This document shows, piece by piece, positions 23,352 through 44,653 of a stretch of DNA of 64,000 bases. A model generated the notes under the pieces. The model saw only the letters and a program-made list of their open reading frames with translations. It searched no databases and was not told where the DNA came from. The stretch covers positions 62,001-126,000 of the forward strand of contig NIVC01001409.1 in NCBI GenBank assembly GCA_002269645.1, given 5' to 3'. How positions within the stretch are numbered: the first letter of the stretch is position 1; each line of letters opens with the position of its first letter. This DNA comes from Macrostomum lignano (taxonomy: Eukaryota). A program made the translations under genes and the position numbers.

Positions 23352-26300
23352 ATGAGTGACTGTGGCCACCCACCATCTAACATACGCAAGCGCTGCGAAT
23401 GTGGCAAAGTGGCCGACAGGCTTCGCTCAAACTTCTGCACTTTTTGCTCGAAAGAGGAAAAGCTAATCATCTATTGCATTGAATGCAGCGAGCCGCCAAA
23501 AAAATGTCGCCATCAGCCAGAAAGCTTTCGCCGAAAATGTAAAAGCTGTGAGGAGGACGAGATGCCATTGCGCGGCAAGTGTTGCACCGATTGTGGAACA
23601 AAGACAGTCTTTGAAGTATTCTGCGTCCTATGTCAAACTGACACGCCGCACGCAGGTAACCCTGAGGCAAGTGGACGAGTAAAAAAAATGCCACACACAA
23701 GTGATTATGAAGAATGCTCTGTAGAAGAGACGCCGAACACAGGTGATCGCGTTCAAGGACGTCTTGTAGAAGAGACGCCGAACACAGGTGAACGCGATCA
23801 AGGACGTCCTGTAGAAGAGACGCCGAACACAGGTGACCGCGATCAACGACGTCCTGTAGAAGAGACGCCGAACACAGGTCATCGCGAGGAAGGGCGTCCG
23901 GTAGTAGAGACGCCGAACACAGGTGATCGCGATCAAGGACATCTTGTAGAAGAGACGCCGAACACAGGTGATCGCGATCAACGACGTCCTGTAGAAGAGA
24001 CACCGAACACAGGTCATCGCGAGGAAGGGCGTCCGGTAGTAGAGACGCCGAACACAGGTGATCGTGTTCAAGGACGTCTTGTAGAAGAGACGCCGAACAC
24101 AGGTGATCGCGTTCAAGGACGTCTTGTAGAAGAGACGCCGAACACAGGTGATCGCGTTCAAGGACGTCTTGTAGAAGAGACGCCGAACACAGGTGATCGC
24201 GTTCAAGGACGTCTTGTAGAAGAGACGCCGAACACATGTCATCGCGATCAACGACGTCGTGTAGAAGAGACGCCGAACACAGGTGATTTCGAGGAAGGAC
24301 GTCTTGTAGAAGAGACGCCGAACACAGGTCATCGCGATCAACGACGTCGTGTAGAAGAGACGCCTAACACAGGTGATCGCGATCAGCGACGTCCTGTAGA
24401 AGAGACGCCGAACACAGGTGATCGCGTTCAAGGACGTCCTGTAGAAGAGACGCCGAACACAGGTGATCGCGATCAACGACGTCGTGTAGAAGAGACGCCG
24501 AACACAGGTGATTTCGAGGAAGGACGTCCTGTAGAAGAGACGCCGAACACAGGTGATCGCGAGAAAGGATGTCCTGTAAGAGAGAGAGTGATTATAATAA
24601 AATTTAGGTGTGCCGTCCAAAATCGTCAAACAAAAGTTGGTTCTTCTGAAGATGAAACAAAATTATTCATTATGATTCACTTCAAAAAGTCAACGCCGAC
24701 TTCTTTGACACAACAAATTGCTTCAATTGATGAGTCTTCGAGTTTTCGTCATCTGTGCTTCACAGCCTCTTTTCCAAAAGACACAAAAGAAGTGAGCTAC
24801 TGGTACGAACTGGAAAAGCAAAGGAGTCCATCACAAGTTGTAAAAGTAAATGTGCAGCCTGGAGAGGTGCAGCTTCAAATAGATGGCTTGATTTTCGCAA
24901 CCGGAAGCTACAAAAAACAGCCTAATGCAGAAAAGGAAGCGCGTAATCTCGCTTTCACAGAAAGCACCTTTCTTGAACTACGTGAACGAGCTGATCAAAA
25001 GATGCCAGTGGCACCTGTGCTGCTTGAAGTCTCAAGGCCGCAAAATCAGCAAATGGTTCATATCGCTTCTGTTGGACTTAAGGTCTGTTTTTTCGAAACG
25101 AATTATTTGTCTCTTTGCTACCTTCATGCACAAGAAGTAAAATATTTTCAGGTGATCGAAAAAATCCTCGAGAATCCAACGGATTTTGGATTCGCCGCCA
25201 GAGACGACAAGACCGCACCTCATTGGCACAACAATCTGCGGCTTATCAAACTTGCTGATCACTGCGGCGCCGTTCGAGCCTATTTGGCGGAGGCCCCTGC
25301 GAGTACTTCCAGCTTAGAAAAACTAATTTCTATGTCACTTCCGCCCACTTCGCTTGAAGAAATTCAAGCCTTACCAGACAATGAACTGTGAGTTACTGCT
25401 ATGAGGTTATGAGATTTTTTTTAGCATGTGGGATTTCAGTGTGAAACTATTTGCCTGTTAAGTTTTAGGAACGCAAAGTCAACTTAGGTTAGGTAAGAAT
25501 ATATTTGACCGCAGCAGTCGGCCGTTAGTCCGCGATACAGGCATTCAGCTTTTTTAGCAACTCGGCGTAAAGAATTGAAAGCCGTACTGTACTGTATTCG
25601 AGCTATGGAAATTAGCCATCGACCATGAATTATACTCATACGCTCGTATTTCATAAATTGTCAGCAAAGCAACAGCTCGAATTATAAAGTCCGTTTTTGA
25701 TAGATTATAATAACTTACACCAAATTAATTACTGAGTTTTATTAAATTCTGTCTTTAGTTAAGTTATTCAGAGGTAGATTAAGGTTTCTAGATGGTTCGG
25801 TAGAGAAAGGATATTAAATAACACAAAATTACATGGAGTTGAGAAGCAAGGTACTCTGCAAAGTACTAACTGGGAGTGCAACAGTTAATACAAGCATATT
25901 TGATTGCACACTATTTTTCATTGTTGTCTTCGTATATACTAAAAATATTATCTTATCTTGTGTGATCCTGTCTGGTAAAATGTTTGACTAATTACACGGG
26001 CATCGCATTGCAGATCGGAAGTGTCAAAATCGGTGCAAAAGATCATGGATCAACTTCTTGATAAAAACAGGCCAGACTTAGCGCTACAACTGGTGCCTGC
26101 TTACCATCTAGTTGTACTCGCTGCCGATCCTAGAAGTAGACAGCATATTCTGAAAGACCAGAAATGGGACGAATCGAAACCAAACGCATGGTTTGGCTTG
26201 GCAAGCAAATTTCAGTACCATTCGCGAGGCTCGGGAAGTGTGGATTGGTCGAGGCTGAAGAAATTTCAAACTATAAGGTGGGGAAAATGTTTTTACCTTT

Positions 26301-44300: not shown

Positions 44301-44653
44301 TGCAGCGCAGCGTCACATTAGCGGATACTAAGCTGCTCTGGATGTTCCTGGACCATCTGCGTTGCCGCTGTCTAATCCGAAGTGACTTGAACCCGTTTGA
44401 AGACTGTGGTGAGGTGATCGAGCTGCCAATGGAGTTGCCGAAAGAGCTGAAGAATCGGCGCTCAATTCTTATGGAGAAGCTGCATGCCTTCATCAGGCTG
44501 GAGCTGAGCAGTGGGCCAGCAATTTACGAGGGCATGGAGCTGCAGGAAGTGTGTGACATCTTTCCCGAGTACGATGAATTCAGCGCTTTCGACGGGAGCT
44601 TCTTGTGCGAGCACGCGGTTGCTGTCTGGACCGCTCTCAATCGCATGGAGTGA
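23352..44653 (+). CDS. RNF213: RNF213/mysterin-like giant AAA+ ATPase and E3 ligase (about 5080 aa), 18 exons: 23352-25387, 26014-26277, 26658-26871, 27093-27440, 27552-27659, 28263-28394, 28476-28668, 28823-29128, 29588-36727, 36830-36977, 37050-37692, 37800-38063, 38161-38267, 38343-39315, 41006-41155, 41800-42082, 42622-42656, 42755-44653; three -1 frame breaks inside exon 9
   Basis: All 17 introns are GT-AG and phase-consistent. Motifs: [139 protein letters not shown], and RZ finger CPNGH..CHEC..IGG.NH, in RNF213 order. Confidence 0.93.
23721..24575 (+). repeat. 45-bp coding tandem repeat, 19 copies of [10 protein letters not shown](V/D)QGR(L/P), in RNF213-like exon 1
   Basis: Units at 23721+45n up to 24531; the frame is open throughout and no phase-compatible donor/acceptor pair found that would excise it. 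Confidence 0.85.
33489..34559 (+). other. Two Walker A motifs of the mysterin AAA core: GETGCGKT (33489-33512) and GKPGSSKS (34536-34559)
   Basis: Read directly; each is followed by a Walker B (VFFDE, VVLDE). Confidence 0.9.
38353..38481 (+). other. RING finger variant C-x2-C-x11-C-x-D-x2-C-x2-C-x15-C-x2-C
   Basis: Spliced translation [43 protein letters not shown]. Confidence 0.85.
39458..40832. repeat. (TCTA)n / (TAGA)n microsatellite, about 1.37 kb, in RNF213-like intron 14
   Basis: Nearly pure tetranucleotide run with occasional TCCA units. Confidence 0.98.
41359..41436. mobile_element. 78-bp hAT-like MITE in RNF213-like intron 15
   Basis: TIRs CATTGGCAGATCCAGG / CCTGGATCCACCATTG (13 of 16 match); near-TSD GCTGTATA / ACTGTATA. 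Confidence 0.7.
42622..42830 (+). other. RZ finger of the RNF213-like protein, split by introns
   Basis: Spliced translation [11 protein letters not shown]|[22 protein letters not shown] keeps the C/H/C/C/C/H pattern of RNF213/ZNFX1 RZ fingers. Confidence 0.88.

Follow-up and report, generated by a model that had tools for sequence, protein, structure and literature searches.

An RNF213/mysterin-family gene of the flatworm Macrostomum lignano, interrupted by three one-nucleotide frame breaks in its assembled form

RNF213 (mysterin) is the largest human E3 ubiquitin ligase, the product of the main moyamoya susceptibility gene, and acts in cell-autonomous defence by ubiquitylating bacterial lipopolysaccharide. 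The human gene comprises roughly 68 exons over about 138 kb. Here, we analyse a 64,000-nucleotide stretch of DNA (the window) from the free-living flatworm Macrostomum lignano (contig NIVC01001409.1 of assembly GCA_002269645.1, positions 62,001 to 126,000 of the forward strand), in which an initial annotation, made from the letters alone, had placed a complete RNF213-like gene at 23352-44653. This segment is very probably a nuclear gene of the RNF213/mysterin family encoding ∼5,110 residues, the reading frame of which is broken at three sites, most probably through consensus errors. Annotations of nemertean, mollusc, hemichordate, echinoderm, amphioxus and Ciona genomes routinely include full-length proteins of this type, named 'E3 ubiquitin-protein ligase rnf213-alpha-like'. 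The RNF213-like family is expanded in symbiotic bivalves, where its members are discussed as immune genes (PMC9993606). In cnidarians, where such genes are likewise annotated and discussed in an immune context, Nematostella immune cells activated with poly(I:C) show induction of RNF213 (PMC13319465). With the family so widely annotated and discussed, and with a UniProt model already in existence, the initial suggestion of an uncharacterised innate-immunity branch was overstated; the window gene is one more member of a family well known in invertebrates from annotation and several papers, and the practical value of the present analysis lies in correcting the full-length gene model and in marking three positions as suspect, rather than in discovery.

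The family identity follows from piecewise matches to RNF213 structures together with colinear alignments. The open reading frame (ORF) at 30951-34823 matches nine human and mouse RNF213 sequences in the PDB with expectation values (E) of 8e-166 to 1e-164, the next PDB family being ClpB at E=6e-7, while 34580-36816 matches RNF213 structures at E=3e-143, with more matched stretches in the E3 region, and 29536-30948 matches the linker of mouse RNF213 (residues 1201-1592) at E=1.3e-13. When the core is spliced, a single blastp high-scoring segment pair (HSP) of 3,925 columns and 28.7% identity joins its residues 226-3833 to residues 1443-5121 of fish RNF213, and an alignment of 3,982 columns to the freshwater mussel homologue is likewise colinear. 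Colinearity, in one or two HSPs, extends to the RNF213 proteins of fish, frog, shark, freshwater mussel, scallop and nemertean as well as to M. lignano paralogues, and spans the protein from the linker to the last residues. These PDB matches, with E-values from 8e-166 to 1e-13, and a colinear alignment of ∼3,900 residues bear out the family assignment made at the outset.

An exhaustive HMMER search of 1.84 billion representative proteins returned 3,433 relatives. The closest is UniRef A0A1I8J9L4, a 'RING-type domain-containing protein' of M. lignano with 99% identity, and the next four matches are also from M. lignano, in agreement with the invertebrate origin that had been proposed. A word-indexed protein search returned almost no close relatives and missed M. 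lignano proteins of 99% and ∼50% identity, so its negatives do not mean absence, and an Rfam scan of the 64-kb window gave no match. It is extremely improbable that the protein belongs instead among other large AAA+ or RZ-finger proteins, such as ZNFX1 or the relatives of dynein and midasin. Such a reading could draw on the Pfam matches of the ATPase region, which are generic (AAA and AAA_5, the dynein-related subfamily), and on the RZ-type zinc finger (PF20173), a ubiquitin-transfer element that ZNFX1 also carries. ZNFX1, however, is a superfamily 1 (SF1) helicase with NFX1-type fingers, whereas the flatworm protein has a dynein-like six-AAA core and an RNF213-type C-terminal domain (CTD); no helicase family was found in a Pfam scan of the large ORFs, and the strong PDB matches, the colinearity over 3,900 residues and the significant fold matches of the CTD model all lead to RNF213, ruling out both the dynein/midasin and the ZNFX1 candidates.

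The gene model was built from splice-site scoring, tblastn with A0A1I8J9L4 and the 5,501-residue M. lignano paralogue PAA82849.1, and inspection of junctions. It begins with the ATG at 23352 and ends with the TGA at 44651-44653, exactly the limits given by the initial annotation, and its N-terminus, MSDCGHPP, resembles MNCGHPP, the start of full-length PAA82849.1. All 17 introns (72-1,690 nucleotides) are canonical GT-AG, and the two parts of the model, of 1,230 and 3,880 residues, add up to the 5,110 residues that make it near-vertebrate in length, as had been claimed. The gene and its exons are laid out as follows.

23352-44653, + strand: the whole RNF213-like gene, from ATG to TGA, with 18 exons and 15,330 coding nucleotides (plus 3 missing nucleotides).
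23352-25387, + strand: exon 1, with a Cys-rich zinc-ribbon array (23394-23642), a 45-bp minisatellite and, at about 24588-24905, a beta-rich domain; matches the N-terminus of PAA82849.1 at 36% identity, E=4e-21.
23719-24587, + strand: in-frame 45-bp minisatellite of 19.3 copies, free of indels, encoding a unit of 15 amino acids.
26014-26277, 26658-26871, 27093-27440, 27552-27663, 28180-28394, 28476-28668 and 28823-29128, + strand: seven exons of the N-terminal arm (N-arm), provisional.
29588-36727, + strand: giant exon of 7,140 nucleotides, encoding the linker/stalk and most of the six-AAA core and holding all three frame breaks.
36830-36977, 37050-37692, 37800-38063 and 38161-38267, + strand: four exons for the end of the AAA core, the hinge and the E3 shell.
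38343-39315, + strand: exon containing the RING-like finger.
39457-40832, strand not assigned: (ATCT)n microsatellite of 1.38 kb inside the longest intron (39316-41005, 1,690 nucleotides).
41006-41155 and 41800-42082, + strand: two exons of the E3 module.
42821-44653, + strand: CTD, from blastp and AlphaFold/Foldseek, followed by TGA.

With 18 exons in 21 kb, one of them 7.1 kb long, the flatworm gene is compact compared to its human counterpart. Alternative acceptors exist for the N-arm exons at 27228 and around 28117-28228, and the frame is open in all tested combinations; a candidate exon at 26414-26647 was dropped, as both the UniProt model and splice-site scores favour an intron at 26278-26657. 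Stops at 36817 and 36979-36987 are not nonsense mutations, both lying inside canonical introns (of 102 and 72 nucleotides, respectively), and the segment between these two introns, which is homologous to the paralogues, is a genuine exon. The (ATCT)n microsatellite gives rise to long 'YLSI' pseudo-ORFs in three frames. Past the TGA, an AATAAA sequence is present at 45068.

The modules follow one another in the order originally described, from the linker/stalk through AAA2-4 and the RING-like finger to the RZ finger and the CTD, and their diagnostic motifs are located at these positions.

32295-32315, + strand: AAA2 Walker A-like motif, ASGMGKS.
33489-33512, + strand: AAA3 Walker A, GETGCGKT.
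33690-33707, + strand: AAA3 Walker B, IVFFDE.
34536-34559, + strand: AAA4 Walker A, GKPGSSKS.
34748-34765, + strand: AAA4 Walker B, VVVLDE.
38353-38481, + strand: RING-like finger, C-x2-C-x11-C-x-D-x2-C-x2-C-x16-C-x2-C, Pfam zf-C3HC4_3.
42624-42656 and 42755-42820, + strand: RZ finger in two exon parts, PF20173 at 63.1 bits against a cut-off of 27, E=1.9e-17 when spliced.

A linker/stalk that includes the conserved LKxFxDLA...G motif precedes the AAA core, and the Walker motifs of AAA2, AAA3 and AAA4 align with those of all 19 homologues. The two intact Walker A/B pairs noted at first sight, in AAA3 and AAA4, are thus present, with the AAA4 pair interrupted in the assembled DNA by the second frame break. 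In the RING-like finger seven Cys occupy canonical positions and an Asp replaces the fourth (His) ligand (CADRLC), in line with the unusual RING features mentioned in the initial annotation; this Asp is shared by the paralogue A0A1I8JAF5 and the homologue of the mussel Sinanodonta. Auto-ubiquitylation by mouse RNF213 does not need the RING (bioRxiv 10.1101/2021.05.10.443411). The RZ finger, interrupted by a 98-nucleotide intron (42657-42754), has the spacing C-x3-H-x6-C-x8-C-x2-C-x8-H, identical to that of mouse C4451/H4455/C4462 (catalytic)/C4471/C4474/H4483, and the four zinc ligands, the catalytic Cys and the proposed general-base His are therefore all in place. For the CTD, the E2-docking domain in mouse RNF213, the blastp HSP reaches residue 3833 of the 3,880-residue core model, equivalent to residue 5121 of 5185 in fish RNF213. 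An AlphaFold model from an 11-sequence alignment (mean predicted local distance difference test score, pLDDT, of 64) gave seven significant Foldseek matches in the PDB, E 1e-12 to 1.5e-7, all of them RNF213, and a next match at E=0.33; as the modelling alignment contained vertebrate RNF213 and TM-scores are ∼0.3, these matches are supporting rather than independent proof. With the C-terminal pieces left unspliced, phmmer gave no PDB match at E<=0.001.

Several observations weigh against reading the locus as an intact and working RNF213. The first ∼1,200 residues are without pairwise similarity to vertebrate RNF213, and a CBM20-like domain is not demonstrable in 24588-24905 (hhalign probability 0.7%). 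The RING, devoid of its His ligand, scores 24.0 bits with zf-C3HC4_3, under the cut-off of 27. The frame as assembled ends at 30949, and the breaks may be real; six minisatellite arrays of the window (6.5 kb in total) run in perfect register with no indel. In the searchable literature no paper on RNF213 in Macrostomum was found, none of the papers listed for flatworms and planarians at large mentions RNF213, and functional or expression evidence is absent for any flatworm RNF213.

The N-terminal region finds its nearest counterpart within M. lignano. Residues 3-120 are homologous to PAA82849.1 with 36% identity (E=4e-21), as are residues 598-1225 of the N-arm (20% identity, E=3e-10), and an hhalign comparison of this flatworm pair with five vertebrate N-arms yielded 420 colinear columns at E=4.8e-5 and 68% probability, which lends moderate support to a common origin of the flatworm and vertebrate N-arms, as far as sequence profiles can tell. 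Several zinc-ribbon-like CxxC...CxxC pairs at 23394-23642, for which Pfam has no match, are conserved with the paralogue. RNF213 from frog, lamprey and fish begins with one such ribbon, and mouse RNF213 has been described with a zinc finger, ZF1, at its extreme N-terminus (bioRxiv 10.1101/2021.05.10.443411). Of the unusual N-terminus reported initially, the zinc finger itself consequently does not set the flatworm protein apart, vertebrates also starting with a ribbon; its multiplication and the in-frame minisatellite that follows do. The 15-residue unit of the minisatellite is rich in Glu, Arg, Thr, Gly and Pro, and this acidic, Arg- and Pro-rich stretch presumably forms a disordered linker. 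Its copy number is 19 in the window and 16 in A0A1I8J9L4. The beta-rich segment 24588-24905 is placed by MAFFT at the position of the vertebrate CBM20 domain; an AlphaFold model of it from a two-sequence alignment (pLDDT 49) has six strands, and Foldseek gave no meaningful match for this model. The region before the FVDLA anchor measures ∼1,480 residues and is vertebrate-like in length, while mollusc and nemertean models have 480-770 residues there, a shortness that may reflect truncated models.

Compared with vertebrate RNF213 (PDB: 6TAX, 7OIK, 8S24, 9G08), the flatworm protein has the same order of modules from linker to CTD and a similar length, 47-49% identity over 584 core columns, the AAA2 Walker A and the AAA3/AAA4 Walker A/B motifs, identical RZ spacing, a matching CTD model and a putative N-terminal zinc-ribbon motif. 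It differs in an overall identity of ∼29%, an N-arm not recognisable in pairwise comparison, the undemonstrated CBM20, the RING Asp, several CxxC pairs instead of one and the 19-copy, 15-residue minisatellite. The invertebrate rnf213-alpha-like proteins in our comparison (Lineus XP_064634464.1, Mizuhopecten XP_021359260.1, Sinanodonta KAL3881517.1, and those of Haliotis, Lottia, Saccoglossus, Amphiura, Branchiostoma and Ciona) share a colinear core, E3 module, RZ finger and CTD, with a core identity of 47-50%, and Sinanodonta, as noted, shares the Asp of the RING.

Closer relatives are found within the worm itself. The whole architecture is common to the M. lignano paralogues PAA82849.1 (Mlig015539g5, 5,501 residues), PAA49636.1/PAA74374.1 (Mlig025717), A0A1I8JAF5 and A0A1I8GUQ9, with PAA82849.1 also sharing the N-terminal Cys-rich array and the N-arm but having a non-repetitive low-complexity linker in place of the minisatellite. 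In a neighbour-joining tree built on the 584 ungapped core columns, four other M. lignano lineages join the window protein in a single clade (100% bootstrap), long-branched and apart from the mollusc-nemertean, amphioxus and vertebrate groups. Over these columns the window protein is 54-62% identical to the paralogues and 47-50% to all other proteins; its identity to the paralogues is 36-45% in spliced-core blastp and 37-45% overall. The tree and the identities argue for a lineage-specific expansion with at least five old, divergent paralogue lineages in M. lignano. A0A1I8J9L4 stands much nearer, being 96-100% identical to the window gene exon by exon, although it is a patchy automatic model of 2,819 residues that omits about half of the coding sequence and has 16 repeats. 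Its substitutions and its repeat number identify it as another allele or subgenome copy, and at least two near-identical copies or alleles are as expected of the three-subgenome genome of M. lignano.

A single ORF through the gene requires one added base at each of three sites, all within the 7.1-kb exon.

30939-30940, + strand: frame break 1, one base missing after 30939, between GAACAA and TCGAC; A0A1I8J9L4 reads CEQIDIV across it.
34614-34623, + strand: frame break 2, one base missing within a ATTTTAAAAA run (T4A5); human residues 2430-2433 align in both frames.
35923-35926, + strand: frame break 3, between AGAGT and GTGAAGG, the switch of frame being confined to 4 nucleotides.

The three breaks sit in contiguous coding sequence aligned with homologues, leaving no space for an intron. 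Short introns at breaks 1 and 2 are ruled out, homologue residues being contiguous or overlapping across them, and so is a 38-nucleotide mini-intron at break 3 (35926-35963), which would delete the conserved LLxxxTP(D/E)SxVRL motif (here LLxxxTPDSVVRL). Once corrected, break 1 gives a residue-for-residue match to the HCCLLCDSLVIRAHLG of the paralogue, and break 2, which lies between the Walker A and Walker B motifs of AAA4, is spanned by a gapless alignment with all 19 homologues. The initial annotation had called the gene complete and had named lack of expression together with confirmed genomic frameshifts as the mark of a pseudogene; as assembled the gene is not complete, and the three 1-nucleotide breaks, if real, are such frameshifts.

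The errors that typically remain in long-read consensus sequences are single-nucleotide deletions. The M. lignano assemblies derive from PacBio data (PMC5730564), and on balance we regard the breaks as consensus errors of such an assembly, in which case the gene in the animal is intact. Each break consists of one missing base, and two of the three fall in short homopolymer runs. With three bases added, no other in-frame stop occurs across ∼5,110 codons, every splice site is canonical, and, judged against the 19 homologues, 140 of 142 invariant columns are kept, both exceptions being conservative substitutions, together with 123 of 128 nearly invariant ones. No splice could yield the CEQIDIV reading of A0A1I8J9L4 across break 1, which therefore documents an intact frame at this site in another assembly or copy. 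It is less likely, though by a long way not negligible, that the breaks are real and mark a very recently disabled copy on one subgenome (S, L1 or L2), with near-identical intact copies functional. Three independent breaks within 15.3 kb of coding sequence would fit this, as would the register held locally over the minisatellites, which suggests that indel errors are not frequent here; 6.5 kb is, however, too short to separate error from real mutation. Redundant copies free to decay are to be expected in M. lignano, whose neopolyploid genome has three subgenomes and includes duplicated non-repetitive sequence amounting to 180 Mb (PMC10733133; PMC5730564), and the real substitutions (96-99% identity) and different repeat number of A0A1I8J9L4 indicate at least two copies or alleles, one of them in frame at break 1. 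Set against this, real breaks would demand an extremely recent inactivation, given the uninterrupted codons and the retained invariant residues, and the lesions are all of the long-read-error type. Exact-product look-ups of the three truncated window ORFs in public assemblies returned no record.

If the gene is intact, its product would start with an array of zinc-ribbon-like CxxC pairs and continue through the minisatellite linker, the beta-rich domain and a helical N-arm with its linker to six AAA modules in a dynein-like ring; an E3 module whose RING is degenerate, then the RZ finger and finally the CTD would follow. The sequence supports nucleotide-binding motifs in AAA2/3/4, an RZ finger with its catalytic Cys and an RNF213-type CTD. 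By homology with the mouse and human proteins, and building on work on mammalian RNF213 (bioRxiv 10.1101/2021.05.10.443411; PMC12075652; PMC11549300), ATP binding by the AAA core would switch on a transthiolating E3 activity, a ubiquitin-loaded E2 of the UBE2L3 type would dock at the CTD, and ubiquitin would pass to the non-zinc-binding Cys of the RZ finger (C4479 in the model) and from there to substrates. The flatworm retains the catalytic machinery of the family to the residue level, in the ATP-binding AAA modules, the RZ catalytic Cys and the predicted E2-docking CTD, and M. lignano offers a genetically tractable invertebrate in which to study it.

A role of the flatworm protein in cell-autonomous defence is plausible by inference from the paralogue expansion and the fast-evolving N-termini. 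A working ATP-regulated E3 of the RNF213 type whose task is instead to regulate lipid droplets or metabolism, or to serve protein quality control at large, appears rather unlikely to us. Mammalian RNF213 has been tied to lipid droplets, lipotoxicity, hypoxia and NF-kB, and its activity tracks the ATP/ADP/AMP ratio (bioRxiv 10.1101/2021.05.10.443411); moreover, no feature of the window bears on immunity. On the other hand, five divergent lineage-specific paralogues with very fast-evolving N-termini are the pattern expected of arms-race genes, and the expansion in symbiotic bivalves and the induction in Nematostella immune cells, both cited above, point away from a purely metabolic role. Among the paralogues the AAA-E3-RZ-CTD engine is conserved, while the N-terminal regions, including the in-frame minisatellite of variable copy number, are almost unrecognisable between copies. 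It is conceivable, but in our view improbable, that the five paralogues are diversified cell-autonomous pathogen sensors with the N-terminus as a fast-evolving recognition module. Were they so, they would provide a flatworm parallel to the positive selection around the CBM20 domain and stalk of primate RNF213, and the RNA interference and transgenesis available in M. lignano would make the ancestral function of RNF213 testable outside vertebrates.

Elsewhere in the window, two ORFs at 3910-6133 on the − strand match Pfam OPA1_C (PF19434; E=1e-45 and 3e-42) and, from these matches, are assigned as predicted 3' exons of a gene for an OPA1-like mitochondrial dynamin GTPase, probably extending towards about 9800. 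The GC content of this stretch is 59-66%, whereas elsewhere it is roughly 42%, and GC-rich minisatellites with a period of 20-23 bp are interspersed through it. A candidate ORF of 524 residues at 49633-51207 (− strand), rich in Gln and Pro and locally higher in GC, contains one hydrophobic transmembrane-like stretch and has no Pfam match. A decayed remnant of a Tc1/mariner-type transposase (DDE_3, PF13358, E=1e-14) extends over two frames at 47425-48684 (+ strand). Minisatellites with periods of 20-63 bp and 11-64 copies occupy 1-1278, 3024-3740, 6969-8256, 10017-11433, 11995-12528 and 14180-15981; five of the six are in perfect register with no indels (10017-11433 was left out of the test), and the 48-bp arrays at 11995-12528 and 14180-15981 are apparently one unit in opposite orientations. 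The minisatellites of the window yield long spurious ORFs in several frames. From 53649 to 63967, almost to the end of the window, runs a 10.3-kb satellite of about 56 copies of a 183-bp unit (369-bp higher-order period) with 91-93% identity. Simple and tandem repeats make up 15% of the M. lignano genome (PMC5730564), and a window dense in minisatellites and carrying a 10-kb satellite fits this repeat-rich background.

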